Positions 3,904 to 39,708 are shown, counted from the first letter of the stretch. The stretch is DNA of 64,000 nt from Orbicella franksi (GCA_964199315.1 OZ116700.1:34410001-34474000); one strand, 5' to 3'. The notes: generated by a model from the sequence alone, not told the origin. Numbers and translations: made by a program.

Positions 3904-5141
3904 TGATCAGTAACTTTCAGTTCTCTGTTTGTCCAGCATGCTAACTGCTCTTCTGTCTCATCCACTAATTCTTCATCATAAAAAAACAATTTTAAATTTA
4001 ACAGGTAGAATGACAAAGTTAAAACAAACTATTATAACAAAATATAATTGTTGAACATTACCTTTTCTTAATAATATTAATCCTGTTACATCTTCCTGAA
4101 GGACTTTGTTTTAGATGTGCTTGCCTACTAGATGTTCTGACTTATAAACAAGTCTCTCTCAAGGTTTACCTCACAGTAACTTTTGTTGACGATGTTTTCT
4201 TTTTTTCTACTTCACCCACATATTAGTTACTGACATTTTGTTGCATATGTAATGTCCACTGTCTGACCAAAATGAGACATGAAGATCAAACACTTAACCT
4301 CACTACTGCATAAACCTCCATCAAAAAAAAAAAAAAGAAAAAACTTTAATTAGTAAGTTTTAAAATTATGGTACAAAACCATAAATTTGTCACAACTGGA
4401 AGATCTTTATATAGCAAGGGAGATAATGTTAGTGTGATGACTGAAACAGATATTTTCAAGAACAAGTAGGTAGTTATATACTCTTGGGAAGTGCTTTCTA
4501 ATGAAAAAAAAATCAAGAAACTAATTTTTGTTTTCAGGTACATGGCTATAAAATTTTGGGTACTTAAATGCAAGGTAGCTAGGATTTGGTTATCAAATGA
4601 GTAATATTTTGGATGTTGACTGCTCTACATGTAACCTGGTCATCTTGACTGATATTTAATAGCAATTATTTCTAGAATTTTACAATATTGTTGCACAGAT
4701 CTCTGAAAATATGGCAACTGAAACAAAGTACAGAGTGTCGCGCTTAATTAAACTCTGAAATATTTAGTAAAGAGATCTATTTTTTATATTTATAATAGAT
4801 ATTTATATGGTATGAAATACAAACATAGTAGACGCTTTCTCAAGAATGAAAGTTAGGTATTTACAGTGTTATTTAGCATATGTTTTACTGAAGAGGTCAA
4901 GAAAGCACATCATCATGCATGTACTGTACATGTAATGTTTATATATATATGCATTTTTCAAACATTCTCAGGTCATTATATCAAAATAAAACACACAAAT
5001 GTATCAGATAATTTTTTTTTATTACAGTCCTTTGTGTTGGTCTAGAAAATACCCATTTCCCTCACACAGAAGGGTTTTTAGCGTGAACCCAACTCCCACC
5101 TCACTGAAAATTTCAGTATACTCTGCTTCATAGTTTCCATT

Positions 5142-5620
5142 CGGTCAGTATAAAACACAGACTGTGGACTGCAGACTGCAGACCAGGACGAAATGCAGAC
5201 TGAGGGTAAATTGCAGACTGCAGACTACAGACATTTTAAGTACCAGGTATATATATGTCGTGCTACTTCCATTATCGAGTCTGTGCTGACCGTAAACAGG
5301 GTTATTCAGGCTAATGGCAGTGAAAGTCTGCACTCTGGTTAGCCTGAATATCACTCTGGTTAGCCTAAATAATGCGCCGGTTGGTCTGTTACGTAAACTC
5401 TCAGTGATGGAAAAGGTAATGTGATTTAGTTCAAAAGTTTACAGTCTGCAGTCTGCATTTTACCCCTGGTCCACAGTCTGCATAATTTTTCCCCTGGTCT
5501 GATGTCTGCAATATGCATTTTACACTGACCGGTTGCCATTGCAGTCTGCAGTCTGCATTTTACACTGACCGGTTGCCACTGCAGTCCACAGTCTGCATTT
5601 TACACTGACTGGTTGCCATT
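5142..5620. mobile_element. MITE with (TGCAGAC)-rich inverted ends; right end tandemly repeated in 40-bp units
   Basis: CGGTCAGTATAAAACACAGACTG at 5142 is inverted to CAGTCTGCATTTTACACTGACCG; the right terminus recurs ending at 5531, 5571 and 5611. Confidence 0.7.
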
Positions 5621-6147
5621 AAATAGGTTGAAAGTCAGTCAGGATTCCAAACATTTACTGTTTGTGTTTGTTTGTCCCAGTCAAGATGGCGTCAATATTC
5701 AATGGTAATTTAGCTATTATCATTAATTTCTCTGCTGTCAGAATATAATTTGTCTGCTTGCTAATTAAATAATAAAGTTCATTTATAGCGCTCAGCAAAT
5801 CACTTTGTGGAGCCTGGATACTTTGACAATCATGGGAAAAAATTCCTTATCAACAATTAATATAAACACCAAACGAAAAAAAGAATACACAATTGGCAAA
5901 ATAAAAAGATGTTACACAACTGTTCAAATAGATTATGTACCTACATAGAAACACAACACCATTAATTTTATCAACTCAAGCAATATTTAAGTGGAAATGG
6001 CTCACCTGAATCATTTTATAACCCTATCAAATTCCAGCCATTTAACTTTGACTCGACATCGGGAAACCACATTTTTCAGCAGTGTTCAATATTTTATATT
6101 CCCGGGTAAATTTAGCCATTGCAGATGTTTTTCTAACACAGCATTCG

Positions 6148-6384
6148 ATTGGACAATTTTGAGCTATGCGACCTGGCGAAAGAAAATAAACCAATCACAG
6201 GATTGGTAATATAAGTTCTGGTCAACAGCCTCGCTTGCATGCCATCTACCAACGCCCCTGGGAGACGACCAAAATATTGCTTGGGTGTAAATCGTGGAAT
6301 TCGAAGAAATAGTGGAATAAAAACCGACTTTGCTGTGTTTTTCGCGTATGAAAGGTCGTCAAATTCCATAAGTGATAAGTAAGT
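6148..6384 (+). promoter_or_regulatory. Putative promoter and non-coding first exon of Cdc42 copy A
   Basis: ATTGG (6148) and CCAAT (6191) boxes, motif blocks shared with 14142-14410, GTAAGT donor at 6379-6384. Confidence 0.55.
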
Positions 6385-7184
6385 ATGTCATTTCTTGTTA
6401 TTAGTAAATCATCGCCGCTACCTGTGGTTTAAAATAAGACCGGCTTATGGCCATAGTGTTTGCGAAATGGTTGGCCGATCACAAATTTGTTTTTCTACAT
6501 ACACAGCTTGGGATATTTGGCTCTCTGCTTCTTCTGGTGATCGTAGTTTTTGTGTGAATTCGTAAGGGAGATGTTATTTCGGGAATCACTGTGAAGTGTA
6601 GATCGAGCTTGTTAATCGATGCTCCAGTATGCAGGACAAGAGAACAAATTAACTGGATATCTTGTTTCATAATTAACTGAGGTTACAAGTAGGCTTATAT
6701 TCGGTTTGTTAGGCCCTGTTTTACCGGCGCCTATTCAGTGATAAGGTTTCTATGCTGCTTTCATGTGTTGTCAAGTTGTACTGACATATCTATTTGGACA
6801 TGACTACCCTATTTTGGAAAATTAACTTGCCATTTTAGTTGGGGTATAAGAGGTGAGTTGTAGAGTTTCCCTAGCTCACAGTTGGCCAGAAGAAAATTCA
6901 TCGCTCATTTGGGTTATAGACCATACACCCCTCACTAATGGACATGCCATGATAACAGACTGTAGGTTGTCTTTTATGTAAGGTAGATGTCTATGTTTTG
7001 TAGGATTTTTTTTATAAGAATTTTGACGAAAAATCGAAACAAAATTGACAGCTGCCTATGTTTATGGAGCTTCCTGCTACTAATAAACAGTTTTATAAAT
7101 ATTTTAAAAGTCAGTCATTTCTTGAATGTTATAGACCTGACACTGGGATCCTAGAGGTAATAGCTGGTGCAATGAAATAAGAAA

Positions 7185-7457
7185 GGGATTGACCAATTGA
7201 TTGGACAATTGATTGCAATATTTGATGCAACATGTTGCAACTTAATATTGTTGGGCGCAACATGTTGCACGCGTTTGGCCACCTTGTTGCAATGTGTTGC
7301 AACATGTTCGGTGTTGTTGGCTCAAATTTAACCATTTTCAAACTTGAGCCTATACCCAACGTGTAGCAACAAGGTGGCCAAAGACATATGGCATGTTGTG
7401 CCCATAATGTTGTTGCAGTATGTTGTGGTGAAATGTTACAATCGTTTGGCCGGGACT
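7185..7457. mobile_element. Palindromic GCAAC/GTTGC-rich MITE (Harbinger-like by terminus); same family as 59119-59353
   Basis: Right end ATCGTTTGGCCGGGACT; internal GCAACATGTTGC palindromes shared with the 59.1-kb copy; left end degenerate. Confidence 0.65.
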
Positions 7458-7469
7458 TAATATTTCCCA

Positions 7470-8460
7470 TTATTATATGCTGTATCTCACAAGGACTGGG
7501 AACTACCAAATTGACGAATTTGATCGGCTGAAATCTACTTGACAGTGGTCTTGATTTTCCCATCTAGACCGCCGTCTAGACTGGTTACATTTTGCGGTGA
7601 AAAAGTTACAAACTAAAATACAAAAATATTGACTAATTTCCTCTAAAAATATCAGTGGAAGTGCCAAAAACCCCAATGAGAAAAGAAAAGTCGAGAGGAC
7701 GAGCAAACTTTGGCAGATTTAAGCTCAGCTCATCGCCGTTTGCAAGCAAAATGTCGGCTAGTACAAACCAGTTTCATTAAACAAATTAAATTTTTCTCGT
7801 TTTGCCGTATAATAAAAATTTTACTCAAAGATCGTAGTCAGTCTCTATAAGAGATTATTATATGGCTGTGTCTTACAAGGACTGAGAACTACCGAATGCA
7901 TGAATTTGATTGGCTGAAATCGATATTGACCGCGGTCTAGATTTTCCCATCTAGACCGGCGTCTAGCCAGACCGGTTTCATTTTGCGTTTACAAAGTAGC
8001 AAACTAAAATACAAAAATGTTCACCATTTTCTTTTATTTTCTTCTCAATCATTTATGGAAGTGCCAGAAAGCCTGATGACAAAAAAAGAAGTAAAGGGGA
8101 TGAGCAAATTTCGGGAGGTTTAAGTTAAGTTCATCGTCGTTTGAAAGCAAAATGTCAGCAAACCAGTTACATTAAACGAATTAAAGTTTTCTTCTTTGCC
8201 ATATAATAAACATCTTATTAACCGAGCTAAGTTGGTCTGTATGGGAGAATCTTGACCTCGGTCGTGTGTACAGACCTCACTGCGCTCGGTCTGTACTCAC
8301 GACCTCGGTCAAAATTCTCCCATACAGACCTCCTGCTTGGTTAATAGGAGCTAAATCTTGACCTTGGTCGTGTGTACAGACCTCACTGGGTTGGGTCTGT
8401 ACTCACAACCTCGGTCAAGATTCTCCCATACAGACCGCCTGCTCGGTTGATAAGAGCTAA
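7470..8460. repeat. Head-to-tail duplicated interspersed repeat (7470-~7815 and 7855-~8460) ending in a partly duplicated hairpin
   Basis: TTATTATATG..ACAAGGACTG..GATTTTCCCATCTAGACCG occurs twice. Hairpin arms GGTCTGTATGGGAGAATCTTGAC (8234-8256) and GTCAAAATTCTCCCATACAGACC (8308-8330); right part repeated at ~8356-8459. Confidence 0.75.
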
Positions 8461-8747
8461 ATATAATCATTAATGCACTTATGAGAATGTATTGCCTTGG
8501 TCAATGCATCACAGAACTCTGAGAAATGTGAACTTGAAGATAAAAAAATAATACACCAATCTCTCAGAATGACTCACATTTTGAGTGTGATGCAATATGC
8601 ATTCAACCATTAAATTTGTTGGTTTATTATAATTTGTTATAACTTTTCACTGCTTTTGAGAAGTTGCAAGGATTAGACTCTCAAATTTTAATGTGTGTTT
8701 TAAAAAGTTCTGATAACAGTTCATTTTATTTTATTTTTAGGGCATAA

Positions 8748-11512
<2,765 letters not shown>

Positions 11513-11833
11513 GAAATGGATAGCTCAGAGGGAATGAGATACGATATTAGACATTTTGCCACCTGGATTTAAAATTTCAGAGGTTTGGGATGTTTCCTAA
11601 ACATTACTGTAGAACAGGAATCTATGACATCTGAAACAATATACTTGCAGTAAAATGTATCATGCTTACTGCCACTCGGTGAAGTTCTTGATTAATCACT
11701 TTTGACATTTATAGTTCTTTACATATCCATAAGCTGATTAATAATGTGTGTTTTTGGCACTTTGATGGTCCTGGAAGTTTGCAAAACCAACAGGAAATTT
11801 TCAAAGGTTTTAAAAAGGTACCTCTGTTCTATC

Positions 11834-12203
11834 AGGGAACTTAAGCGAACCATGATGGCAATGGCAACAAAAATATCACCAAACAAAAGGTTTGATGAGC
11901 AGAATAATGGCTATGCACCTGCATTTTTAAATCTTCTTACATTTCATAGCTGTCCACTGCAAAGCAATAATTTGAAATGACCAAGTTTTGCGTATTTTGG
12001 AGAACGTGGGCCATGACAGCAAATTTTTGTCTTTTGTTTTGGAATTGATCGCCTACATTACATATTTAGTTTCAGCAGGTTTTCAGACTAATCAAGGGGT
12101 ACTGAGCAGATTCAGATAGTTACGAAATTCGAGAGTAAAATATCAATCCATTTCTTACTAGGCATTGTCCCTGGTGTCGCCATCATCATAGCTTAAGGTC
12201 TCT
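11834..12203. mobile_element. MITE with AGGGAACTTAAGC...GCTTAAGGTCTCT ends, downstream of the Cdc42-A stop
   Basis: Imperfect terminal inverted repeat; no ORF. Confidence 0.55.
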
Positions 12204-13129
12204 AATGTCAAGGAGGATGAGAAGGATGTTACTCGGAATTTAACAGTGGCTTCAGTCTGTTTTTCTATCCCATTATATATAACATTATTTTGTAAAGTGC
12301 ATTTTATTATAGTCTTGAGCGATTAAGTTTCCCAATTTGCTCTTGATTAGAAGTCTCATTTTGTTCAGTGAAACAACTGAAGGCAAACTACAAAGCAGCT
12401 GAACATGGCACCAACCTGACAAACTCATCCTCTATTTATCTAAATAATTGATAGTACCTTTACAAGGTAATTTTCACATGTTTTTTACAGTACATTGATC
12501 CGAGTCAAGGGCGTTTCCTGGCGAGGGGATGGATGGTAGAAATGACATTTTTATGAGCTCAGTAAAAAAATATATGTGTACCAATATGAGCTTCAATGAG
12601 ATCCATGGATGAATCAATGTGAAGACAGGCATCTTCAACTATCCGCTTAATTAAGTAAAAGTAAAGAATTTACGTTTATTTAGTATTTCTTCACCAGTTT
12701 TACATATCCTAATTGCCTCTTTTTGGAGCTGTGAAGAGGATGGTAAGACAGTGTAATACTGTCATATAGCAGCAATTTTTAACTTTTTAACACAGTTGCT
12801 TTATACGAAGAGTTCTGGATACCTATATTCAGTGACAGAAGAAAAAAAAAATAAATGAATAAAAACAGTTATAAGTATTTTTAAATGAAATTATATACAT
12901 AGAGTTTATTAATAGCATAACAAAATATCATAATGATATGTAAATTTTTAAATTAGGCCATTTTACATTTTTGTATCATATTTCGTAGTCTAAAGTACTG
13001 AGGGGTACAGAAATGATGCTAAAAGTTGATGATGAAGTTTTGAAATTTAAATGTGAAGTATATAAAGAAAATTGGTAATTTAACAAATAAATATTCTTTG
13101 TTTGGAGAGTTGATAGACTACTGTTAGTA

Positions 13130-13361
13130 CATTCTCATCCTCAGTGGCCACGCTCCGTTTGGTCAGCACCAAGAATCACGATCTTTGGGCTGGTCCAACA
13201 CTACATGCCCATAATTCATTGACTTCCCATCAAATCTGACAAATTTGATTGGCTGAGAATACGAAACGAATACTCTGCATATACTCAGAAAATCAGGTCT
13301 GGCCAGAGGTCGCAATTCCTGGTGCTGACCAAAAGGAGCATGGCCTAAGGGGACGAGAATG
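13130..13361. mobile_element. 232-bp MITE with long TIRs and a perfect 9-bp target-site duplication (Mutator-like)
   Basis: CTGTTAGTA at 13121-13129 and 13362-13370 flanks CATTCTCATCCTCAGTGGCC...GGCCTAAGGGGACGAGAATG; GGTCAGCACC/GGTGCTGACC lies within the TIRs. Confidence 0.85.
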
Positions 13362-14141
13362 CTGTTAGTAATGATCTGATTTAGCTTTTGGCATGGTGCT
13401 TTTGCATGGAAATTTTAGAGCTTAAATTTTGAAAAGGCGGGGGAGGTGCTAAATTGTATCCTAATTTACATAATATGTTGATAATATGAAGCCTGAGAAC
13501 TGACAGTTTTGTTGTCATGTGAGCTATATATATATATATAGGTATGTTAGGGGCATGGGTTACCTTTTGCCTCTATTTCAATGTCCTGATCTGATGTAAA
13601 TCTTTGACTCCAAAGCAGTGCAGAATTTTACAGTCACAACTTGTGGGCCATATATAGTTCATGTGTGGTGGAAGGCTGTGCAGCTAGTGTTGACTCCCTT
13701 TGGCTCTTGCAATACCTTCATGTGTCATTTCAGTAGCCAATTACATTTGTATGCACATTGGAGTTCCCAAACAAAGGAAATTTTTAATATTTCTCCTTTG
13801 GGAACAATGATTCATGTAATGTCCATCTGCAATGATTAATTTTTTTCAGTTTGAGAACAAGTTATATGGCTGTAAAAAAAAATCTTTTTATGGATCCCAG
13901 AATCAAGAACTCAGCCTTTTTGCAGTGTAAGCCCAGAGCAATAAAATCAGCAAAAACTTGTGACGATATTTTCCTATGAAAAAGGAAAAACTTCCATTTT
14001 GCCTTTTGGGCAGGGATCATAATTGATACACGCTCAGCTGCACAACAAAGATAAGGAAGTGAAGTAATCCAGACAAATTTCTTGCTTTATATTCTGTGGT
14101 AAATTTAGAAGTTGCAACACAGTTTTATAACGAAGATGACC

Positions 14142-14410
14142 ATTGGACAATTCCCAGCGATGCGACCTGGCCTTATTAAAGTGAACCAATGATATTACAC
14201 AACAGAATTCGCTCCATATAGCCTCGTTTCTATGAGCATCGCTACTCGAGGGCCCCCCGCCAATTCGTCAACCAACGCCCCTGGAAAGCCGGACATCTCG
14301 TTGCAAAAGTGGAATTCATGGAAAAAGCGGTAGTTATATAGTTTAGATACCCGCTCCTCTTACGACGTTTGTAGGGCATATAAGGCGTCAAAACGTAATA
14401 ACCGGTAAGT
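14142..14410 (+). promoter_or_regulatory. Putative promoter and non-coding first exon of Cdc42 copy B
   Basis: ATTGG (14142) and CCAAT (14186) boxes, blocks shared with 6148-6384, GTAAGT donor at 14405-14410. Confidence 0.55.
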
Positions 14411-15153
14411 GTTGCATTTCCCTAGTTGTATATCCTTCTCCATAACTATTTTTGCCCTGATAAATTCGTTCGCTTCGATTTTTCTCGCCATAGTCCGCCA
14501 TTTCTTGCGACATGAATGGCAACGATATTCTTTGATGATCTCACTCTTTCGCGAGGTTGCGAGAGATTGATCAACTCGGAGGAATTTTAGCAGCCAGAAA
14601 AAGATAGCTGTAGGGATGTTATGATGTGACAAATAGTGTAAGTATTGAAGTGGAGTATTCACCGTCCTTCATTCCATCGGAGTGGTATCGTCGACCTCTG
14701 CATTGAGATTCTGAAGTTGTGAAACTTTCATTCATTGTATTCAAACTTAATTTGAGCAACATTTTTGTGTCAGTACTGTAATAAGGCAGGCTAGTGACTG
14801 ACGAACATCTTCATTGAGAGTGAAGTTAATCCAGAGAAAGCACATTTTCTAGATAAGCTCAAACCTTCCTACACTCTAAGCGCATATTTTCTTCGCGGTT
14901 TGGTTCGTTCTCGGCCTATTCAAAATTCATGACTATATGACGAACAGGAGATCTCCGTTTTTGCGGCATACTACAGCGATACAACGACCCTTCATACTTC
15001 TCGAAGCGAACTTTTGCTGTCTTGGTTCATGTTTGTAAATCTATATCGAAATATGCCGGGGCAAGCGAGTAGTTTGTTGACGCCTGTCATACGAAGTCCT
15101 AATCATATCGAATTTTATACTTTCAGGTTTTCCACATTGGCCGAAGACCGTAA

Positions 15154-18370
<3,217 letters not shown>

Positions 18371-20987: not shown

Positions 20988-28031
<7,044 letters not shown>

Positions 28032-28472: not shown

Positions 28473-28634
28473 CAGTGGCAGATCTAGGGGAAGGGCCGGG
28501 GGGGTTCGCCCTCCTCCCCCCTCTCCAATTTTGGGTAAAAAAAAGAAGAAATCACAGAAGGAAGAAAAGCCAGCAGGGCAAGCAAAACAACCCCCCCCCC
28601 CCCCCCTTTAGCTTCAGGTCTGGATCTGCCACGG
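28473..28634. mobile_element. MITE with CAGTGGCAGATCTA...TGGATCTGCCACGG ends
   Basis: 14-bp imperfect TIR; GCAAA direct repeat at 28468-28472 and 28635-28639; internal poly-G/poly-C runs. Confidence 0.65.
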
Positions 28635-29224
28635 GCAAAGCTAGTGCTCAACCCTTGAATGATGCTTTCCACAGGTTTCCTTGGGGGCTACACACCCAAG
28701 ACTGTTCAGAACTACGGCTGCAAATCTGTTTCAAGTTTATTACCCATAAGGCTGGCAGTGAAGTGTGAAGTGGTACCAACTGCTCACCCTCTCAAATTTC
28801 TTCCCATGCAATAAATGGCCTGTGAGCACTGCAGAGTGGAACTTCAGCAGAAGTCGGGGGAAAGGTGAAGGGACGTCCTATCGTTTCTTTTGTCCGTTCC
28901 AGTTTTCTCCCACAGTTGTTGTTCGCTTTAAAGTAATAATGTCTGTTCCCTAACCTGTAGCCTCTGTGCATAACTCTTGGTAGGCTAGACGTGACCCTAG
29001 TCCACTGTTCCATTGCACAAGGTGTGACCGGAAGTCCGATTACTTGATCAGGCCTGGGTACTAAAGTTGTAGGCTGAAGCATGAAGCGAAAGACATGTCC
29101 ATATTTGCCGATAATATATGTTAGATTAGTGTTCTTTCGAATTCTAGAGCTCACATCACATCCATCCCCTCACGTGTTGTTAACATTCGGTAAATACTCC
29201 GTCAAACGTGTTTGAAACCTTGCC

Positions 29225-29345
29225 GCAGTTGAAATAGTAGACGAGCCGAGCTGAACGTGGAACAAAATGGCGTCCAATTCTAAATCCTCTCGTGATCTCT
29301 TGATTTCTGGCGTTCGTCAAAGAATGTAAACATTTGTTGGTGAGT
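29225..29345 (+). promoter_or_regulatory. Putative promoter-proximal first exon of the Roco gene
   Basis: YY1-like AAAATGGCG (29263-29271), GTGAGT donor at 29340-29345, pyrimidine-rich acceptor CCCTTCAG ending at 32085, CCGGAAGT ETS-like motif near 29028. Confidence 0.5.
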
Positions 29346-31208
29346 CAAAGGTTTTCTTGTTTAGTCGTTAGACTAACTGTAAGTTTTTAACGTGAATAAG
29401 GGTCAGCAAGTCGTTTGCGTTCAACCATTTATTGTTTTACGGATTAAAATCTATACGTTTAATTTGTTACCCAATCTCACATAAGGCCATTTGCATTTGT
29501 TATGCCTTTTCGTTTATAGTCTGTGGTATATTGTTAAGTTTAAATTAGACGTGCTACGATTTGGTTTTCTCTGACCCTTATTCCGTCCTCTACACTTTCC
29601 CTCAGGGCTTGAAAGGTTATCTGCTGTAATACAATTCCTTTCGAATGTAAAAGTAAGCTAAAATCTTGCACTGATAAATTGTAAGTGAAACATATGACTC
29701 TCCCTGACCCCTCAATGTAGACTTGCCGGGAAACTCATGTTAATATTGCCAGCACAAAAGCTATCAATCCATGCTATAAATATTCATAATTTCATATGAG
29801 TTATAATTAAACATACTTTCACCATATTTCGCAATTTTAAAATAAAATGTAACATTTTTCCAAGTGATGTCAGACCAAATAGGAAACTATCTGGCTCTCA
29901 TTCACAGTAAAGGCATGGGAGTCAATTAACGTGACTGATCCCATTTCCATAACTTCAATCCAACTCCTATTTGGCTCTTGTGCAGTGTATAGTGCATTTT
30001 TTGCAACCTCATTTGCATAATGGTTAGCACCAAGAAGTCTAGGTTCAAACACTAGTTGGGGTCATTGTGTTTGGTCTTGCAGGGTTGCAGCTAAGAATAT
30101 AGTCTCCTGGTGAAAATTTTCATTGAGCCGGTCACCATTTTTCACGACAGACCTGAAACAAAATTTTCACTCCCAATCTTTTGCAATGCCTTGAATGCAG
30201 GGCTACCAAGCTTAGCGTTTACAAGATGGTGGATGCAGCACACGGAAAGAGAACATACTAAACAAGTGCTCAAAACAAGATTTCATTTCAATTACTTTAC
30301 TTGTTATAGTGGCACCGATACTCAAGGTCAGGAATTGATTCCAAACTCTTCATTTAGTTGATTTAGGTGGTTCGATATGGTTCAGATATCGAATGATTGT
30401 CTGTGCGTAACCTAAAAACCTTTCGCTGTCCTTTCCCAAGTGATTGCCCGCCAAATCCATCCAACAATCACCACTTTCTCAGCCAGAAAATGTTGCCAGC
30501 AGCCGGTGCTTAGCAACAACCCTGGCCTTGGGAAAGACATAGTCTGCACTGGAGCAAAGAATCTCATACTGCTAGATGAGAGCTTAGTGTGGTTTTCATA
30601 ACATTAAACTTCTTGGAGAATCTCTGTTTTTCGTAGATGGGATGAAAGTCCAAGAACATGAGACAGTTTCCCCAATTACTGCTCAATCCAAATTGTGTGG
30701 TTCCAGAAAATATCCATATTCCCCAGGAGGGCTACTAGAAATTCTAAAGAGGAGGGAAGTCACAGAAGCCAACATTTTTTTTTTACAGGAAACTGGAATT
30801 TCTAGAGGGAAAGGGGGGTTCAAACCAAAAATCTCTCCATGGGAAGGGTATGGATACCATTGGTCCACCACATTTGCATATTGAGGAAGGTGACATTTAA
30901 TGTTATGTTCCAAACTGGGGTGGATCAGTCCAACTCCCTAAATGAAAGAAATGCGACATCATAACTCACTGACTTGGCCTCAGAATGCTGGAAACTCCAC
31001 TTCGGAGGACCTAAATTTTAAAAGTTTTACTGGGGAGGATGTCCTCCCACTGGATGTTTTTGCAGTGCAGCATCGAAAACTAGAGTTCTTCTTTCTTTTA
31101 ACGATACTTTTCGAACTGAGAGATAATGATTGTGAATGTAGTGAAAATCATAACAAATACTTTATTTAAGAACTCCAGTAGAAAAAATAAGTCTTATCTC
31201 TGCTTGTC

Positions 31209-31500
31209 AACCAATCAATCAACTTTATTAAAGAGGGTGACACATGACGCTATAAACTGATTTAAATTAGTTGCCCTCTATGCTAAAAATCTACGAGTAA
31301 TTATAAAATAACTAAGTATAGTACAAAGTATGGACAATAAAAAGTTGCAATGAATAAAAAAGTATGTGTATAAACATAATTACAATGATTTAAAAATTCC
31401 TAACTATAACAATTACTATTATTAAAATTAACCTAACTACATACACGCAAAATTATAAAAGAATAAAAGTTAAAATATTAAGAGATTGTAAAATGATCAA
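31209..31500 (-). mobile_element. 3' tail of a 5'-truncated LINE-like retroelement
   Basis: Reverse strand reads AT-rich UTR then AATAAAGTTGATTGATTGG, a poly(A) signal plus GATT microsatellite tail as at 50909-50992. Confidence 0.5.
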
Positions 31501-31509
31501 TATTAGCAG

Positions 31510-31827
31510 CCCCCTTCCCAAAAACCCTTACCCTATCTATGATCAAGAATTTGATATGAACCTATTTATGAACTGATCGTTAAATCCAAGACTGATGTTA
31601 AAGGCATTATGAAGGGCTTTGGTTGATAGACTCGGGTTTATCGATAATGATGAAAAAGTAGCTTCTTCTCAAAAACATACCCAATTCAAGAATAGAGCAC
31701 AAAAACCACACGCTATTTAAGACCAAAATGGCCAAAATCGATACCCTATTTCTGACCAAAAAGGCAAAAGAAAAACATACCCTTTGGCCCGCATATACCT
31801 ATATAGCCCATATAAGGGAGTACTCCC
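31510..31827. repeat. Interspersed repeat ending in GCCCATATAAGGGAGTACTCCCC
   Basis: Recurring ACCCTATTT(A/C)TGACC-type submotifs and a terminus typical of an abundant anthozoan MITE (recalled pattern). Confidence 0.45.
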
Positions 31828-32124
31828 CAGGGATTTAGCCAAGCGGTTACCGTTGCTGAGAACTGGGCCCTGGAGTGAGGGTTGTGGGGGAAAGGTGTCT
31901 TGTATAGAAACTGCTAGGAATGAGTAATGTGGTCTTCTCCACAAGTTTCCTTTCTCGCCCCTCGACTTCAGTAGCCCTGAGAGATGAGGGGGGAGGCATG
32001 AAGGGGTGGGAGAGAATAACTTTGGGAAGACGTTTCTCTTCATTTACTGAAAATCGCACTTTTTTCAATTCATATTTCCCTTCAGTTTCAAGGTGCAATG
32101 CCGTGAAAGAGGAAGGCCTTCACA

Positions 32125-32844
32125 ATGAGAACCGTCAAATGTGTGCTGGTGGGAGACGAAAACGTCGACAAACGGGAATTATTCATCAAGTACATGAGCT
32201 TGTTGAATTCTGAGGTGGAAACAGCGACGGAAACAGAGGAACATGAAAATCCCAACACGGCAAACCAGCTGCATTGCAACGAGTCAACCGATGTTTTTGA
32301 AAACGGAGATGTCGCTCATGTTAATAACAGAGAAGGATCAGACGGTGAAGGAATTCACAACAGTCATCCAAATTTCAGAGTAATCCACCATCGCGATTCG
32401 GAGAACGCCAGTGTGTCGAGCGTAGACCAGGACTCTATCGACCAGTGGTCTGGCACGGTTACCGTAGCCGGCAAACATTACTTTTTGGACCTCCGTGATG
32501 CTCACTGCCAGGAGGCGTTTGACAGCATCCGCCCAGAGGCCTACAATGACACGGACGTTTTTCTTGTGTGTTTTTCTGTTGTACGGTCAAGCTCTTGGGA
32601 GAACGCATTGAACAAGTGGATACCTGAAATTCAGCATTACCGCCCTGTTACCCCGTTCATACTGGTAGGCACCCAGACTGAATGGCGCGACCTGTGGGAT
32701 GAGAAAGACACGTCGAAAAAACCGGTTTTCTCGGTTACAGGAACCGGTTATGCGCAGCAGGTGGGCGCTGTTAAGTATCTAGAATTCGCCACTGGCGACA
32801 ATCACGTCAGAGAGATTCTCAATGCGGCTGTGTTGGTCAGCATC
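32125..32844 (+). other. Degenerate Cdc42-subfamily GTPase domain with a 68-aa insertion (N-terminus of the Roco ORF)
   Basis: Constant +68 residue offset to Cdc42 from D38 to D118; G1 GDENVDKR, G3 DAHCQ, G4 TQTE, G5 EFAT. Confidence 0.85.
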
Positions 32845-35800
32845 ATGGACAGAATGGCACTGTCTACATTTCATCCCGACTTTGACAAAGATGGCTTTAC
32901 TTTGCTTCACCGAGCCGCAAAACTCAATCATATTCCTTCTCTGGAAGCTCTCGTGGACTCCATTGATGTGAACGCCAAGGACAAAGATTTACAAACTGCG
33001 TTAGATATAGCGGTGAAGGAAAACAATTTAAATGCAATACGATTTCTTCTCGAAAGCGGCTGCGAATTTCCCAACCCACCCGACTCTTGGAAGAAATGCT
33101 GCGAGTTCTGGGTCAGTGACGAAGGTGAAGACTCGGAGCGCGTCGTGAATAGCGACATTGCCGAATTCACCCGACAACTGACATTTTTTTACACGACCGC
33201 GTCGCCCCGCCCACTCGCAAGAATTCTTCTGATTGGTCAAAACGGAACGGATGTGGCGAAGTTTGTGAACGAGACTGTGCCGATCTTACCCGTTCGGTCG
33301 CTGACCATTGTGAATTCAGAGGGACCAGCTCTGTTTGACTTTTCGCGTGTCCAGTCTTCTTTAGAATCTCTAACGATGACAAACTGCGATCTCGGTTCTG
33401 CGGAGTTGCCAGGCACCTTGTACACAGTGGCGAGTCTCAAGAGTTTGAGTGTGATTAAATCGGGAGTATCACGGCTTTCTGAACAGCTTGGCGAGCTGAA
33501 AAGTATGCAGCGCCTGCGTTTGAGCGGGAACAAGATTCGGAAACTACCCGACACGATTTCCCGGCTACAGAAGTTGAAATTTGTTCACTGTGATCACAAT
33601 GCGCTGGATAATCTTCCCGATACCCTTGGTTGTTTGGGGTCGCTAGAGGGCCTGGACTTCACTCATAACAAATTGGAGAAACTGTCGGCATCGCTGGGCC
33701 TGCTGACCAATTTGCGAAATCTTTGGTTCGAGAGAAATCGTCTGAAATTTCCGCCCGCTCACATCCTCAACAAAGGAACCGAGAGCATTTTGGAGTTTCT
33801 TAGTGATTTCTTAGACGATCCAGTGGCCAACAATCAGATCAAAATGGTTCTCGTGGGAGGAAGCAAGGTGGGCAAGAGTACACTAGTGAAGGCTCTAAGT
33901 CACTCCAAAGACTGGCGAATTAGCGGAGTCGGTCCAATTTCCAAGACAGATGGGGTCCAGATATCCTCTATGAATCTAATGCGTTCTAAATTGAAAGTAT
34001 TTGACTTGGCAGGGGACGAAGCCTTATTCAGCTCGCATCACTTCTTCCTGTCAGAGAACACTCTTTACCAAGTCGTTTTTGATATGAGCGCGTACACGGT
34101 CAGCAAGACTTCGTTGCAAATTAACCAGCTTGGCAGGTTAGAACTTTGGCTTCAAGTTATCTTCTCTAGAGCTCCGAACTCTCACGTGCTTCTCGTCGGT
34201 ACTCACGCCGACGACCCGAAAATCACCGACGACATACGAACGCGCATTCGTCGAGACATCGAGGCGCTCTTGAGTAAGTATCGTCGTGAGCATAGACGGC
34301 AGTTTGAAGGAGAAGCTGTACCTCAATGTGGCCTTTGCGAAGGGACCCTCATCAGCGAGGGCTCAGCTACTGGCTCGTTTTATGTTCAGGATCAAGGACC
34401 TCCTCATGCTCCTGGTCTCGCGCCTGAACCCTGCATTCCTCACGTAGTAGGCTACTATGAAGTCAGCTGTCAGGGCCAGTTTCCCAAAAACTTCCTCAGT
34501 TCTAAGAATCGGAGCCTGCAGAAGTTTAAAGTGGGGGTGGGCTCCAGCGCCCACATTCTTCTCAGCACGAAAGTCAGTTCCCGTATCCCACAGAAATGCT
34601 TGTACGTGCGGGACAGAATACACGAAATGTGCAACGCAGAGAATGAATTGAAGAACTGGCCGCTTCTTACTTACGACCGCCTGCGCGAGATTGCGCACGG
34701 ATGCGGAGTAAAGCAAGACTTCAAACTCAAGGCTCTCATGACGTATTTTCACTCGCAGGGAGAAATCCTCTGGTACGAAGATATGCCAGGCGTTGGTGAT
34801 GTGATCTTTATTGATCCTTCCTGGTTGTCCAAACAGATGTGTCTTCTCGTCGGCTCGCCTTCTGGCGCCAGCTCGGGACTTGACGGAATATTGCGGATTG
34901 ACAACCTGGCCAAGACTTGGCCTGACGTTCCCGAAGGACAGCGGTTTTCCATGCTGACTTTGTTCAGAGATCTCGGATTGTGTTTCCCTCTTTCCGAGAC
35001 AGAAGATGTTGTTCCATTCCAACTTCCCATCGGCCGACCTGACGAGGACACATGGCCAGGGCAGCCTTCGGAAGATCAGCGGCAGATCAGCTGTGAGTTT
35101 CATTTCAGTTTTCTTCCTCCAACTTTCTTTAGTGACCTCACAGTTGCCATTAACAGGCGGGAGCTGCCGAATAGCTTCGACGTCGAACCAACATTCTACC
35201 GCTTTCACATGGTCTTTGCGACAACGTCCATCGCCAGAATGGGTTGTTCGCTCCATTGTAATGAAATCTCGGCTCATCCTTTGGCAGAGAACCTGAACGT
35301 GCACTGTGTTAGCATCGAAGGTGTCCCGTGCGAGAACAAGTTGAAGGTGATCATACGAGGAAAATTCCCTTGCTGTATTCTTCCTGATGTGAGAGCTGCC
35401 ATCAAGACTGTTGTGGACACGCGCTATCCTGGAATACGCTACATCAGACGGATTGTATGTTCCGCTTGTGAACTCGCGGCGTTCAAGAATCCCGCGCTTC
35501 TGAAAGAACTCGTTAGCGACGGCAGTAACTGTTGTTCGTGGGGGCACATTCTAGGAACCGAAGCGGAAATCGTGGCTGGTGATCTACCTGTAGACCCTGT
35601 TCCGTCTGAGTTACCAGTGAAAGGCGCTATCAGGTCGGGGGTGTTTTTTGGCGAGGCTGGTCAAATCCTAGATGACTGCTACTGCCCCAGGCTTCCTGCG
35701 GTCTTCCCGATCGGTTTTCACAGCGCGCCGTTCAAAAAGCGCCTTCGTGTCAACTCACCAATTAAAGATGGCTACTCAGTACATTTCTTGTGCGAATGTC

Positions 35801-36243
35801 CCGGATATTGGCATTTAACTGAGGGTCCAGGCTTCCGCATACCAAACATCCGAGCATTCCTGGAGGTCTTCGGGGCGCGTGCATGCAAGCTCTTGAAACT
35901 CGCTTTCATGTTGCGAGAGGATGACACTGAGGACGGGTCCAGTGAGTCACGTGTTCCGGTGAAGATCGTCTTGGGTGACGCAAAGTTTCGTGACATCCTC
36001 ATCACGGACATCCAAGATTTGCTAGAACACTACTTCGTGGAATTTCCTGAACTGAAGAATAGCTACATGGGTTTCATGCAAGAGGATTTAGACTTCATGC
36101 AGAGCTACCAAGGAGTCAGCCGTGGTAAGACCTGCAAACTGCTGGAGATCTCACCGGATTGGTGGAGACTGGGTCCGCTTGTCTGCACTTACAACAACCG
36201 GACCAATGAACATCTCTGGCTCTGTGAGAAGCATGCGCTGTAA
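32125..36243 (+). CDS. Single-exon 1372-aa Roco protein: Cdc42-like pseudo-GTPase, 2 ankyrin repeats, LRRs, ROC, COR and Cys/His-rich C-terminus (MFHAS1/MASL1-like core, no kinase)
   Basis: Uninterrupted 4119-nt ORF. aa1-240 Rho-like (MRTVKCVLVGD; [11 protein letters not shown]; KWIPEI; PFILVGTQ; AVKYLE). aa254-314 ankyrin (DKDGFTLLHRAA; DVNAKDKDLQTALDIAV). aa~390-545 LRR (LRLSGNKIRKLP; LDFTHNKLEKL). ROC from aa571 (GGSKVGKST, TDGV, DLAG, THAD, EVSC). COR-like YFHSQGEILWY and FIDPSWL. Confidence 0.9.
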   Translation: MRTVKCVLVGDENVDKRELFIKYMSLLNSEVETATETEEHENPNTANQLHCNESTDVFENGDVAHVNNREGSDGEGIHNSHPNFRVIHHRDSENASVSSVDQDSIDQWSGTVTVAGKHYFLDLRDAHCQEAFDSIRPEAYNDTDVFLVCFSVVRSSSWENALNKWIPEIQHYRPVTPFILVGTQTEWRDLWDEKDTSKKPVFSVTGTGYAQQVGAVKYLEFATGDNHVREILNAAVLVSIMDRMALSTFHPDFDKDGFTLLHRAAKLNHIPSLEALVDSIDVNAKDKDLQTALDIAVKENNLNAIRFLLESGCEFPNPPDSWKKCCEFWVSDEGEDSERVVNSDIAEFTRQLTFFYTTASPRPLARILLIGQNGTDVAKFVNETVPILPVRSLTIVNSEGPALFDFSRVQSSLESLTMTNCDLGSAELPGTLYTVASLKSLSVIKSGVSRLSEQLGELKSMQRLRLSGNKIRKLPDTISRLQKLKFVHCDHNALDNLPDTLGCLGSLEGLDFTHNKLEKLSASLGLLTNLRNLWFERNRLKFPPAHILNKGTESILEFLSDFLDDPVANNQIKMVLVGGSKVGKSTLVKALSHSKDWRISGVGPISKTDGVQISSMNLMRSKLKVFDLAGDEALFSSHHFFLSENTLYQVVFDMSAYTVSKTSLQINQLGRLELWLQVIFSRAPNSHVLLVGTHADDPKITDDIRTRIRRDIEALLSKYRREHRRQFEGEAVPQCGLCEGTLISEGSATGSFYVQDQGPPHAPGLAPEPCIPHVVGYYEVSCQGQFPKNFLSSKNRSLQKFKVGVGSSAHILLSTKVSSRIPQKCLYVRDRIHEMCNAENELKNWPLLTYDRLREIAHGCGVKQDFKLKALMTYFHSQGEILWYEDMPGVGDVIFIDPSWLSKQMCLLVGSPSGASSGLDGILRIDNLAKTWPDVPEGQRFSMLTLFRDLGLCFPLSETEDVVPFQLPIGRPDEDTWPGQPSEDQRQISCEFHFSFLPPTFFSDLTVAINRRELPNSFDVEPTFYRFHMVFATTSIARMGCSLHCNEISAHPLAENLNVHCVSIEGVPCENKLKVIIRGKFPCCILPDVRAAIKTVVDTRYPGIRYIRRIVCSACELAAFKNPALLKELVSDGSNCCSWGHILGTEAEIVAGDLPVDPVPSELPVKGAIRSGVFFGEAGQILDDCYCPRLPAVFPIGFHSAPFKKRLRVNSPIKDGYSVHFLCECPGYWHLTEGPGFRIPNIRAFLEVFGARACKLLKLAFMLREDDTEDGSSESRVPVKIVLGDAKFRDILITDIQDLLEHYFVEFPELKNSYMGFMQEDLDFMQSYQGVSRGKTCKLLEISPDWWRLGPLVCTYNNRTNEHLWLCEKHAL

Positions 36244-36721
36244 GACGAGTTGCATGGACACTTGAAAGGAACAAGTCACGCTACCACACCTTTTATCGGG
36301 CCGCGACTCTGTTTAAATTAATCTTAAATTTGAACGCCATGAATAGCTTAAATAGTTTATATGTGGCCGTTGTTTTTTATCTACTTCAAGGAATATAGAT
36401 ATTCGTAGATGTAACAACTAATGCCAAAGTTTCCAACACGAGGTTCTAAACGGTGACTCTATTTAACAGAGTAGTAAACTTTATAAAGTCACCTGAAAAA
36501 GGGACGATTCTTCCCCGTTACCATAGTCTTTTTTGATAACGTTTTTCAGTTTTTTGTAAATACAAACGTCAACCAGGTCTCCTAGGAACCTCAAAGGAAA
36601 CTTAAAATTCAATAAACACACTATTAGCACTATTAGCACTATTAGCACTGTAGTCACACTATTAGCACGAGCAATTAGCTTTTTCTTTTATTACTCTCGC
36701 TGCATTATTAAGAGGATATTC

Positions 36722-36845
36722 ACGAGTTACCTTCCGCCCTGTGTCAAAGTGAGTCTTCGTGCAAGACTATTCATATCAAACTGTGTTTCATCTGTGTTCA
36801 TTTTACATGAGGACTCGTTTTGAAACAGAGGCAAAAGGCTCTCAT
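36722..36845. mobile_element. Short MITE remnant (GTGTCAAAGTGAGTC...GACTCGTTTTGAAACAGAGGC)
   Basis: Imperfect inverted ends; no ORF. Confidence 0.5.
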
Positions 36846-37291
36846 AGTCGCGGAAATAAGAGCGACCCGCTTAAATATCGCGGACGCAGACATTCCGAAA
36901 AGGTGCATCCCGCTCCGCTCCCTCCGATATTGAATTATTATTCCATCATTGAATTATTATTATTATTATTATACCAAGAATGTTGTCCAGATGAAATGAA
37001 GCTGTATCGTCAACGGTGACGATAGAGGGTATATTTTTCAAAAATTGAATTTGCAAATCGAGTGAGAATTTTGAGCTCATTTTTACGGGTTGAATTTGTA
37101 ATATATTGTTTTTGCAAATATGTTAGTTTTTTAACAAAACGTATTCTTGTAAAGACTTTTGTTTAATACTGAATATTCAGAAATTTCTAGTCATTGTGGA
37201 ATTGTGGGTCAGACAATAGCTTGCAACAATTGATTGCGATTTTTTGAAGTGGTTTGTGGTGTGATTTATGACTTTTATACTTCCCTTCATT

Positions 37292-37479
37292 AATAGGCCA
37301 CGCTCGATATATCAATGTTCTAACATGGCTACGAGGCTTTCAGGACAAACATGATATTTGGTGGTATTTTATATGTATCCATATCTCTTTTGGGAATTGT
37401 GAGACTATAGAAACTTGCAATTTTGACCCGAAAGCCTCGGATCCATGTTAGAATATTGATATATCGAACATGGCCTATT
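37292..37479. mobile_element. MITE with ~37-bp TIRs (AATAGGCC...GGCCTATT)
   Basis: AATAGGCCACGCTCGATATATCAATGTTCTAACATGG is inverted to CCATGTTAGAATATTGATATATCGAACATGGCCTATT. Confidence 0.85.
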
Positions 37480-38847
37480 GTTAAATGGGCAAACATGGTG
37501 TTTTATGACGCCAATTAAGGACAAAGCAAACCCCGGGAGCGAAGTTGAGCTTAAGCCATTTTCCTGCGGTGTGCACGAGTGGCAAATTGTACAGTGCCTC
37601 GAACTCCATATGTAGCCGGCTATAAATCCATTTTTCATTATTCCATTCTTGTCACAGCAGTCATTCGCCCCTGTAGCTTGATTTGAACTGAGTTATTGAA
37701 ACTGACGTGGTATGCTTCAACCTTACCCTGCCACCCTTCAAAGCGCGCTTTTTCACTTTGCTCTGACGTGAGGTGTATTCTGACCAATGAGAACAGAGAT
37801 TTGTCTTTCAACAAGAATCACGGCGAACCCTATTTTAGCCTGAAACTAAACGTTTTCCCGCGCTACCTGTGTAGCACGTGATAACGCGATACAGAAGGTT
37901 TTGCCTGAAATCTAACAGCTAAATTCATTCCCGCAATTTTTCTGTTCTTCAGTGCAATTCTAATCTGGGAAAACATCCCATAACAGAAATATATCACAGG
38001 TACAAAAATCCTTATTTACAATAACAACGTAAAATCCTGCGTAGAAAAATCTATATTTCACCCAAGTTACTCTAAAAAGATTCTTAGTCCTTATATGTAA
38101 TTGCTGCCTACTGAGACTGTAGGATATTTAGGTTCTTATTTCATAAGAAGAAAACGTGTTTGCTTTTGCTGCAACAAGTCTACATGGGTGTTGCCTTTCT
38201 TCCCCCTTATGTGAACCGAATATGTAGTCGGGCTTGCCATAGGAATTCTAGTTTATGTTTTGTATTCGTGGTTTTGGTTCGTATTTTTAAACCAGTCACG
38301 GTTTTAATTTTTAGGCTCAACAGGTTCCTAAAAATGAGGTTTCGCACGCTAAAATTGTAGCCTAAGGGTTTCGTATCATAAGGTTTTAACAAAACTTTAG
38401 CTCTAAGTCAGCACTTAAAGAAGCTTTCGTATCGAAGAAATCCATTTATCTTTCAAAGAAAAGTCAAAATGTCACCTTGAGTCACAGCCAATCTGTAAAA
38501 GAATCACGTCAAAGGGGATTCAAGCAAAATTAAGTGACTAATCGGCATAAAGAATGTTGCTGGTTATATAACCATAACTAAGATTAAATATATTGCAATT
38601 ATTTTCCAGCGGCTGCAAATATTCACAGTTTTCACAAATAGCTCACGACAAAGTGATTCATGTCTTTCCATTTGTTGGTGGCCTCAGTCAAAAATTCCCT
38701 TACCGCACGCCCGTGCGTAATGTATCCCATGGGACACGATCTTAATTGCTGATTCACTATGCAAAAAGTCTTTAAGTATTCTATGACCCGGGAATTCTGG
38801 AAACTTCAGTTTGAACACAGTTTGAAGCTTGTCCAAAGTGAACAGAA

Positions 38848-39708
38848 ATGAAAATGAGAATGGTAACCCGAGAACCAGTTGAAGTGATACCAAGGGTGGA
38901 TGTCAAGGATGTTAAAGTTATACGCCTCTTGGGGGCTGGCGGGTTCGGTTCCGTCTTCGAAGCTATGCACAACAATTGCAAAGTAGCCCTAAAGAAATTT
39001 CACACCAACACTCGCAATAAGAAAGCTGCGATGCAGAGCTTTGAGGCCGAGATGCATCACGAAGTCTTGTCTCTCAAGCATCCTCACATCGTCCGTGTTT
39101 TGGCAGCGAACACCGCAAAAACCTTGGAAGACCAGCCTTGTATCATCATGGAGTTTGTAAGCACCAGAAACCTTCAGCATGTTCTTGACGACGCCGACGA
39201 AAAGATCGATTTTAAACGACGCGTTCGGTTTGCATATGAGGTGGCTCTGGCGCTGGAATATGTGCATAGCAATAACATCGCACATCTCGACTTGAAACCT
39301 GCCAACGTTCTGATTGCGCAGGATGATAGCTGCAAACTCGCCGACTTCGGGTGTTGTCAGATCATCCAGGAACGACCCAACACCCCCTCCAGATCGTACC
39401 TCACCGGAACTTTTGCCTACCGGGCACCGGAGCTTCTTAAAGGAGAAAGCCCAACTTTCAAGGCTGATGTTTTTTCACTCGGGATCTGCTTGTGGCAATT
39501 CTGGACGCGAGAAATTCCGTACAAGTTGCAAAATCACCAGATTGTGATCTTTCAAGTTGTAGCCTGCAATTTGCGTCCGCCGATCCCCAAGGGGAATGAC
39601 GTCGACAACCGGTACAGGGAACTGATAACGTCATCGTGGTCCGGTAACCCTAGTGACCGTCCTTGCATGCCAGAAGTCGTGAACTTGTTGAAGAGTCTCC
39701 GTCCTTGA
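38848..39708 (+). CDS. MOS: Mos serine/threonine kinase (MAPKKK), intronless, 286 aa
   Basis: LGAGGFGSV, VALKK, HLDLKPAN (HLD rather than HRD), DFGC, GTFAYRAPELLKGE, KADVFSLGICLWQ..REIPY form the Mos signature set; lack of introns is typical of Mos genes. Confidence 0.92.
   Translation: MKMRMVTREPVEVIPRVDVKDVKVIRLLGAGGFGSVFEAMHNNCKVALKKFHTNTRNKKAAMQSFEAEMHHEVLSLKHPHIVRVLAANTAKTLEDQPCIIMEFVSTRNLQHVLDDADEKIDFKRRVRFAYEVALALEYVHSNNIAHLDLKPANVLIAQDDSCKLADFGCCQIIQERPNTPSRSYLTGTFAYRAPELLKGESPTFKADVFSLGICLWQFWTREIPYKLQNHQIVIFQVVACNLRPPIPKGNDVDNRYRELITSSWSGNPSDRPCMPEVVNLLKSLRP

Follow-up and report, generated by a model that had tools for sequence, protein, structure and literature searches.

RESULTS

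A Roco protein that opens with a Rho-type domain

We analyzed a 64,000-nucleotide stretch of the genome of Orbicella franksi (GCA_964199315.1, OZ116700.1:34410001-34474000; hereafter 'the window', with positions counted from its first nucleotide), in which an initial annotation had singled out one uninterrupted open reading frame (ORF) and read it as a dual-GTPase Roco protein. The ORF stands as described at 32125..36243 on the plus strand and encodes 1372 amino acids. In order, the protein contains a Rho/Cdc42-like G domain, two ankyrin repeats (ANK), leucine-rich repeats (LRR), a ROC GTPase domain, COR-A and COR-B domains and a Cys/His-rich tail. The N-terminal G domain (hereafter the N-domain) is very probably a pseudo-GTPase as judged from its motifs, and the reading that we favor, which we hold to be probable, is that of a kinase-less, LRRK-like Roco protein in which a domain derived from Cdc42 or Rac would serve as an interaction or regulatory module on a scaffold switched by ROC.

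Pfam matches agree with the two ankyrin repeats, LRR, ROC and COR that had been proposed, and with the lack of a kinase. The Ras family matches the N-domain in two stretches (the better at residues 105–233, 87 bits); COR-A (PF16095) scores 57.7 bits against a cut-off of 35.3, and COR-B (PF25497) scores 24.8–26.7 bits, slightly below its cut-off of 27. The ROC domain carries canonical motifs (GGSKVGKS, DLAGDE and THAD) that are invariant among the aligned orthologues, and its nearest solved relatives in a sequence search of the PDB are LRRK2 (E 1.6e-13) and then LRRK1 (E 3e-10); the COR region aligns weakly to the COR of LRRK2 (second stretch, 8.9 bits). A ROC domain with COR directly C-terminal to it is the tandem that characterizes Roco proteins, and ANK followed by LRR ahead of ROC is the arrangement of the LRRK subfamily (Roco group 2). 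The kinase and WD40 domains of that subfamily found no match at E values up to 10 in residues 893–1372. Likewise, no Pfam match to the EF hands that characterize Miro proteins was obtained; the two G domains are separated by ANK and LRR.

The fusion is carried on a single spliced mRNA

Between 0.8 and 0.94 of the sampled ORF words were present in polyA and cDNA RNA-seq runs. Each of four RNA runs yielded one contig of 4.8–5.2 kb that is colinear with positions 32085–36835/36838 and has no joint within the ORF; the Rho-like and ROC–COR parts therefore reside on one mRNA, as the initial annotation required, and a 68-residue insert within the N-domain (described below) is not spliced out. All four contigs depart from the genome at 32085. 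In three of the four (runs X1–X3) a further 263–276 nucleotides of 5' sequence follow, the end of which matches 29309–29338, at an exon that ends at 29339. The GT..AG intron between 29340 and 32085 is spliced out in these contigs, which rules out contaminating DNA as their source. The acceptor is separated from the ATG by an in-frame TGA (32104–32106), which fixes the start of the protein at MRTVKC. The gene thus consists of two exons, with all coding sequence in one of them, and the fusion transcript is real. The GC content of the ORF region is raised (0.48–0.51, versus 0.35–0.41 in the AT-rich flanks).

The N-domain has a Rho-family fold and degenerate nucleotide-binding motifs

The ORF had been described as starting in exact register with Cdc42, and the alignment bears this out: residues 1–24 correspond to Cdc42 residues 1–24, and residues 105–238 to Cdc42 residues 37–175. 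The G4 context LVGTQ, on which assignment to the Cdc42 subfamily had been based, is also present. In a sequence search of the PDB, Cdc42 was the best match (E 1.9e-31, 113 bits), followed by Rac1 (E 4e-28, 102 bits). The subfamily assignment therefore stands as to the best match, but by a small margin over Rac. In a tree of N-domains a very long branch (about 2 substitutions per site) leads to the coral sequences; it joins the Cdc42 grade and falls outside a Rac clade that is itself supported. The N-domain of a hemichordate relative from Glandiceps talaboti, which has diverged far less, shows 58–62% identity to Cdc42 sequences and 57% to Rac1 (214–222 versus 206–209 bits). The preference for Cdc42 over Rac is thus consistent across analyses of the sequence, with small margins throughout, and is best regarded as marginal.

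AlphaFold2 was run on residues 1–240 with an alignment of orthologues and Rho-family sequences. The model comprises a G-domain core with a predicted local distance difference test score (pLDDT) above 90 in most blocks, together with a disordered stretch at residues 41–104 (pLDDT below 50). A Foldseek search with this model returned only Rho-family structures (Rac, ROP and Cdc42) among its top 50, with template modeling (TM) scores of about 0.8 by target length. The region that the initial annotation had proposed to check for a Ras-superfamily fold is accordingly modeled as a Rho-family one.

The nucleotide-binding motifs within this fold are altered. The P-loop (G1), GDGAVGKT in Cdc42, reads GDENVDKR; G3, DTAGQE in Cdc42, reads DAHCQE; G4, TQxD in Cdc42, reads TQTE; and G5, ECSAL in Cdc42, reads EFAT. 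None of them conforms to the functional consensus (G1 GxxxxGK[ST], G3 DxxG, G4 [NT][KQ]xD, G5 SA[KL]). This degeneracy, together with an insert after T35, is conserved in the coral orthologues, and the orthologue of Actinia is degenerate likewise, which argues against the term 'dual GTPase' in its functional sense. Among 13 aligned coral sequences, residues D11, V14, D15, K16, D125, A126 and C128 are invariant or nearly so, and the switch-II residues D133, I135, R136 and Y140 are invariant; such conservation fits a maintained surface rather than decay. Of the properties expected of a pseudo-GTPase, a G-domain fold (in the AlphaFold2 model), loss of motifs and purifying selection were all seen, and loss of nucleotide binding is predicted from the motifs. 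The Rho-insert region is 4–7 residues shorter than that of Cdc42. No CAAX prenylation box is found in the N-domain, which is internal and runs directly into the ankyrin repeats.

The insert after T35 is predicted to be disordered, and contains conserved islands (HPNFRVIH and a Ser/Asp-rich patch). Intron 1 of Cdc42 is a phase 0 intron located between T35 and V36, and the coral insert lies exactly at that site, with T35 retained; its position fits an origin by exonization at an old intron site. We also considered that the insert might be an unspliced intron, and rejected this possibility: the RNA contigs retain it, and in every orthologue its reading frame stays open and its sequence is conserved, with a ratio of nonsynonymous to synonymous substitution rates (dN/dS) of 0.31.

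Every part of the protein is under strong purifying selection

We calculated dN/dS by the method of Nei and Gojobori for the gene in the window and its orthologue from Desmophyllum (dS about 0.77). The ratio is 0.10 for the whole coding sequence (CDS), 0.094 for the Rho core, 0.14 for ANK, 0.07 for LRR, 0.12 for ROC and 0.085 both for COR and for the C-terminus. Together with the value for the insert given above, these ratios indicate strong purifying selection on every part of the Roco protein.

A conserved Cys/His-rich module replaces the kinase

The C-terminal module displays a series of motifs (C..GH; CP.L..V.PI; DGY.VH.LCECPG.WH; PG.R; W.C..H), and its invariant Cys/His motifs are kept from corals to hemichordates and a nemertean. 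It has no match in Pfam, and searches of the PDB with residues 1086–1372, by sequence and by profile, returned nothing significant (best E 0.16). No feature match in the ESM Atlas reached 0.8, and the only clusters indicated were ones with a COR context; an AlphaFold2 model built with 14 sequences was unusable (pLDDT 39). Its position, in the place of the kinase and WD40 domains of the LRRKs, makes it a likely output or targeting part of the protein.

An old family with intact and degenerate N-domains

The initial annotation had proposed a lineage-specific chimera. A word-index search instead recovered 16 full-length orthologue clusters from stony corals, with 71–99% identity and an identical Pfam set; these include the Desmophyllum orthologue, named 'hypothetical protein OS493_006132'. 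A 207-residue protein from Oculina patagonica (P0062) seems to be a model of this gene that is either truncated or frameshifted. The architecture of the window protein is also present in Actinia tenebrosa (XP_031549381, RefSeq, 1359 residues), in a model that includes the upstream exons; its N-domain is degenerate in residues of its own (GNEDVDKK, NSNSED and TQIN) and bears a 44-residue insert. Further members were added by exhaustive profile search followed by Pfam scans and name look-ups, and the phyletic range of the family was read from the few proteins that carry names. With anthozoan paralogues and a hemichordate protein sharing the layout, the restriction to one lineage does not hold. 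Judged from these sequences, this is an old family that spans Scleractinia and Actiniaria and is conserved across Hexacorallia.

A group of anemone-like homologues (P0017, P0175, P0356 and P0372) is systematically mis-modeled. In the lineage with 43–46% identity (P0017, P0175 and P0356), all gene models begin at one common place. The contig that encodes P0017 (L001:1-190, Logan) starts with an intron, and the frame upstream of the called methionine still reads as the tail of a Rho domain. This intron lies just ahead of the Rho-like G5 strand, so that gene callers start at the methionine of 'YMECS' and the N-domain is hidden in databases. Family members are named 'uncharacterized' or 'hypothetical', and three (P0003, P0324 and P0360) carry the automatic UniRef name 'non-specific serine/threonine protein kinase', which is wrong because these proteins contain no kinase domain.

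The N-domains of the family form a series. An intronless paralogue within the anthozoan clade (P0358; L003:8001-11849, on a contig of ENA ERZ25072724), which also contains ROC, has an N-terminal G domain in which every motif is canonical (GGVYVGKS, DTNG, TKGD and ECSAK) and is probably, from its motifs, a genuine dual-GTPase Roco. Two further anthozoan paralogues have an intact P-loop (P0359) and a very degenerate domain (P0182). The Glandiceps protein (XP_077978787, 1307 residues) has a near-canonical Cdc42-like domain, which is altered only in the P-loop (GDHDADKT) and lacks the insert; C-terminal to it are ANK, ROC, COR and the Cys/His-rich module that the coral protein also has. Motifs G1–G5 are thus intact in the paralogue, altered only at the P-loop in the hemichordate and all lost in the hexacoral orthologues. 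The ankyrin repeats come first in relatives from Hydractinia, Tubulanus, Saccoglossus and Branchiostoma, which lack a G domain at the N-terminus.

A tree of the shared ROC–COR–C-terminal part places all anthozoan proteins in one clade (Shimodaira–Hasegawa-like approximate likelihood ratio test support of 99), with members that bear the G domain in both of its subclades; the fusion therefore predates the split between anemones and corals as well as the duplication that produced the paralogues. In the same tree the Glandiceps protein groups with hemichordate proteins that have no N-terminal G domain, which implies either that the fusion is older still and was lost several times, or that fusion took place there independently. 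An approximately unbiased test on the N-domains (a tree that excludes the N-terminus of Saccoglossus, which consists of ankyrin repeats) did not reject a single clade (p 0.34). The replacement of Gly15 by Asp common to corals and Glandiceps was considered as a synapomorphy of a single fusion, and was rejected on the ROC–COR tree and on the position of P0358 within the anthozoan clade; since the P-loop of P0358 is intact, the replacement in corals and in Glandiceps is convergent.

A tentative extension of these results, which we find rather doubtful, is that Cdc42-type domains were fused repeatedly to the N-terminus of this kinase-less Roco family, once in the ancestor of anthozoans and again in Glandiceps, and driven each time towards a nucleotide-free or pseudo state, Rho-type GTPases having been ancestral ligands of the ANK–LRR arm. 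If so, the coral protein would be a self-liganded Roco or, at the extreme, an integrated decoy that senses pathogen effectors directed at Rho.

Genomic neighborhood and further features of the locus

The features of the locus are collected in Table 1. The tandem pair of Cdc42 genes noted initially was found upstream on the plus strand; the two genes share the same exon structure and the peptides from their first coding exons are identical. The proposed PSMC2 and MOS-like neighbors were also found, and the order PSMC2, Roco gene, kinase, vigilin is identical in Desmophyllum pertusum.

Table 1. Features of the Orbicella franksi Roco locus, in order along the window
Feature	Position	Strand	Basis or remark
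Canonical Cdc42 genes, tandem pair	8790-11500 and 15175-18367	+	tblastn and splice sites; four coding exons each
PSMC2, 3' exons	25480-28031		between Cdc42 pair and Roco ORF
Non-coding 5' exon (start approximate)	29065..29339	+	RNA contig ends; donor G|GTGAGT at 29339/29340
Intron in 5' untranslated region (UTR), GT..AG	29340..32085	+	acceptor ...ttcccttcag at 32085
Single large exon, whole CDS and 3' UTR (3' end approximate)	32086..36838	+	colinear RNA contigs
CDS	32125..36243	+	single ORF, 1372 residues; stop codon included
Cdc42/Rac-derived domain, very probable pseudo-GTPase (residues 1-240)	32125..32844	+	Pfam Ras, Cdc42 match, AlphaFold2 fold, Foldseek
68-residue insert after T35 (residues 36-103)	32230..32433	+	alignments; predicted disordered
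Two ankyrin repeats (residues 251-315)	32875..33069	+	Pfam Ank_2/Ank
Leucine-rich repeats (residues 390-536)	33292..33732	+	Pfam LRR_14, 63-67 bits
ROC GTPase domain (residues 573-696)	33841..34212	+	Pfam Roc PF08477, 73 bits (cut-off 27 bits)
COR-A (residues 827-960) and COR-B (residues 986-1118)	34603..35478	+	Pfam
Cys/His-rich C-terminal module (residues 1121-1372)	35485..36240	+	conservation
MOS-like kinase	38848-39705		downstream of Roco ORF

Two upstream ORFs (uORFs) are present in the 5' UTR: one of 20 codons in exon 1 (29267–29329), and a minimal one (ATG-CCG-TGA, 32098–32106) located 19 nucleotides ahead of the main ATG and in the same frame. They may confer translational control on the Roco gene. 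Within the 5' UTR intron, at 31594–31987, RNA contig depth reaches 1,400–16,000, compared with 14–102 across the gene itself. Numerous short, incomplete contigs and loose ends occur there, and the element resembles an abundant transcribed interspersed repeat. A search of 28500–37500 against Rfam, the intronic repeat included, gave no match, and a minus-strand ORF that overlaps the repeat (31717–32043) had no Pfam match.

The 3' UTR contains a short run of a 9–10 nucleotide unit (CACTATTAG-like) at 36614–36650, in which runs X1 and X2 show several small deletions relative to the window, indicating length polymorphism among individuals or close species. Another run (X8) displays an in-frame insertion of three nucleotides (GTT) at 34376 in the CDS, along with many extra substitutions, and is probably from a different allele or a sister species. 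Antisense ORFs within the CDS (such as that at 34363–35547 on the minus strand, 394 residues) were regarded as fortuitous, given that the coding sequence is GC-rich.

DISCUSSION

A proposed mechanism and its alternatives

In the mechanism that we consider probable, ROC would be the only nucleotide switch of the protein and would act with COR as it does in other Roco proteins. The N-domain would no longer cycle nucleotide, and would be kept as a fixed-state surface for protein interaction or regulation. It might dock on the adjacent ANK and LRR and so supply a small-GTPase ligand from within the protein, the counterpart in cis of the contacts between Rabs and LRRK2, or alternatively bind partners of Cdc42-type GTPases, with the disordered insert after T35 acting as a flexible and possibly regulated linker. 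Because the protein has no kinase, its output would probably pass through the C-terminal module. Binding of small GTPases to the N-terminal repeats of LRRK2 brings about its recruitment and activation (PMC6337361), and CDC42 and ARHGEF7 are reported as LRRK2 interactors (PMC2966438). These contacts make a Rho-type domain fused beside ANK a plausible 'Rosetta stone' for an interaction between the two.

Several points weigh against this mechanism. The loss of nucleotide binding by the N-domain is inferred from its motifs, and nucleotide can be bound without canonical ones, as certain atypical G domains illustrate. Cdc42 engages its partners through switch I and II, and these surfaces have changed most in the N-domain, so that the binding of genuine Cdc42 effectors or guanine nucleotide exchange factors (GEFs) is uncertain, as is the coupling of Cdc42-pathway binding to Roco signaling that had been proposed initially. 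The proposed output module has no recognized fold. Finally, the absence of an N-terminal G domain from the Hydractinia, Tubulanus and Saccoglossus models shows that the core is able to function when it lacks one.

The N-domain might instead be a nucleotide-free mimic of Cdc42, in which replacement of Gly15 (VDKR in corals, ADKT in Glandiceps) resembles the G15A and G17A mutants and would tether or sequester a GEF of the Dbl or DOCK type on the scaffold. The G15A mutants of Cdc42 and Rac are standard baits for active GEFs, and Asp at this position occurs in corals, in Actinia and, apparently independently, in Glandiceps with its other motifs intact; the switch-II residues D..IRP..Y are kept as well, and ARHGEF7, the reported LRRK2 interactor (PMC2966438), would fit such a role. 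The portion of switch I that contacts GEFs is disrupted, however, and G60 is lost in corals. In addition, the fully intact P-loop of P0358 indicates that GEF capture is not the ancestral role of the domain in this family. We regard this explanation as unlikely.

No target is hit more often by bacterial toxins and effectors than Rho GTPases, and a pseudo-Cdc42 could mimic one as an integrated decoy or guard, the binding or modification of which would fire LRR–ROC–COR as an innate-immune switch resembling those of signal transduction ATPases with numerous domains (STAND). Such a role would account for a domain whose enzymatic function is predicted to be lost and which is nevertheless conserved, and T35, a residue of Rho GTPases that several toxins modify, is kept in nearly all orthologues. 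Proposals of immune receptors among the LRR-Roco proteins of brown algae (PMC11378527) also lend it some weight, as does the down-regulation of an MFHAS1-like gene, not shown to be the same as the present one, during symbiont uptake by Acropora larvae (PMC8861010). The gene is, however, single-copy as far as seen, syntenic and very old, and its dN/dS is uniformly low (0.07–0.14), with no sign of the diversification that immune receptors typically show. Conservation is lacking at the position that corresponds to Q61, and the 68-residue insert interrupts switch I, so that the native Rho surface would be poorly mimicked. On this evidence a decoy is quite unlikely.

A true dual GTPase, in which the N-domain binds and perhaps hydrolyzes nucleotide through a non-canonical pocket and the protein contains two coupled switches as in Miro, appears very unlikely. 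The equivalents of Lys16 and Asp57 are kept, the fold is intact, and P0358 possesses all five canonical motifs, but Gly15, Thr17, Gly60, Asp118 and the SAL motif are all replaced in the window protein, and the acidic residues E12 and D15 introduced into the P-loop would repel phosphates. An artifact (a chimera of assembly or annotation, or a decaying Cdc42 retrocopy that happens to lie in frame with a Roco gene) might be suspected from the intronless CDS some 14 kb from the Cdc42 pair, but is refuted to near certainty by spliced polyA RNA contigs across the junction in four independent runs, a full-length ORF in the 16 orthologue clusters and in Actinia, and an N-domain dN/dS of 0.09.

The probable reading of a Cdc42/Rac-derived pseudo-GTPase built into a ROC-switched scaffold is of wider interest, as contact between small GTPases and the N-terminal repeats of a Roco protein is central to LRRK2 biology and a Cdc42/Rac-type domain is here fused ahead of the ANK–LRR arm. 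Strong selection has preserved the fusion over hundreds of millions of years, and the fusion predicts a physical link between Rho and Roco proteins that can be tested. The intact, half-degenerate and fully degenerate versions within one family provide a natural series for the change from GTPase to pseudo-GTPase. The family also defines an unannotated metazoan Roco subfamily, with a conserved C-terminal module in place of the kinase as its likely output, and corrects the kinase label applied in UniRef to proteins that contain none.

Comparison with known systems

A 2019 review divides Roco proteins into the groups LRR-RocCOR, LRR-RocCOR-kinase and DAPK; a Rho-type G domain is not among the many accessory domains that it lists (PMC6337361). 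The initial annotation had stated that no Roco with a Rho-family G domain at the N-terminus was known, and we likewise found no description of one in open-access papers and preprints, although such an absence is not proof. In the same literature, only Miro turned up as a protein with two GTPase domains.

The coral protein resembles LRRK1 and LRRK2 (Roco group 2) in its ANK–LRR–ROC–COR order and in the TH.D type of its ROC G4 motif. Unlike them, it is devoid of kinase, WD40 and ARM domains and ends in the Cys/His module instead, and it carries a Rho-type (pseudo)GTPase in cis, as its own N-terminal domain, whereas LRRK2 binds Rabs in trans. Identity between the LRRKs and the coral protein across ROC–COR is about 23%, and the word-index search recovered a single classical Roco with a name, a kinase of the size of LRRK1.

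MFHAS1 (MASL1; Roco group 1) is, like the coral protein, a kinase-less metazoan Roco, and its coding sequence is largely contained in one large exon, as in the coral gene. No protein named MFHAS1 was recovered in our sequence searches. MFHAS1 comprises LRR-RocCOR only (PMC6337361), without an N-terminal G domain or ANK, both of which the coral protein adds together with the C-terminal module.

Miro (RHOT1/2) similarly has two G domains on one polypeptide, of which the N-terminal one is Rho-related. It differs in having EF hands between the G domains and a C-terminal membrane anchor, and no LRR, ROC or COR; furthermore, both of its G domains bind nucleotide.

RhoBTB and other atypical or pseudo Rho GTPases (Rnd, RhoH and the pseudo-GTPase domains of p190RhoGAP) resemble the coral protein in placing a Rho-family G domain, with altered or lost GTPase cycling, at the N-terminus of a larger protein, where it is used as an interaction module. 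Their partner domains are BTB or RhoGAP rather than a Roco core; Rnd and RhoH still bind GTP, whereas the coral G motifs are all degenerate.

The Roco proteins of Dictyostelium likewise tie a Roco core to the regulation of small GTPases, through RhoGEF, RhoGAP or RasGEF domains (PMC6337361). They carry these regulators and a kinase, however, in place of the Rho-type G domain itself. We conclude that the coral protein is an undescribed variant within the Roco family, and not a new kind of system.

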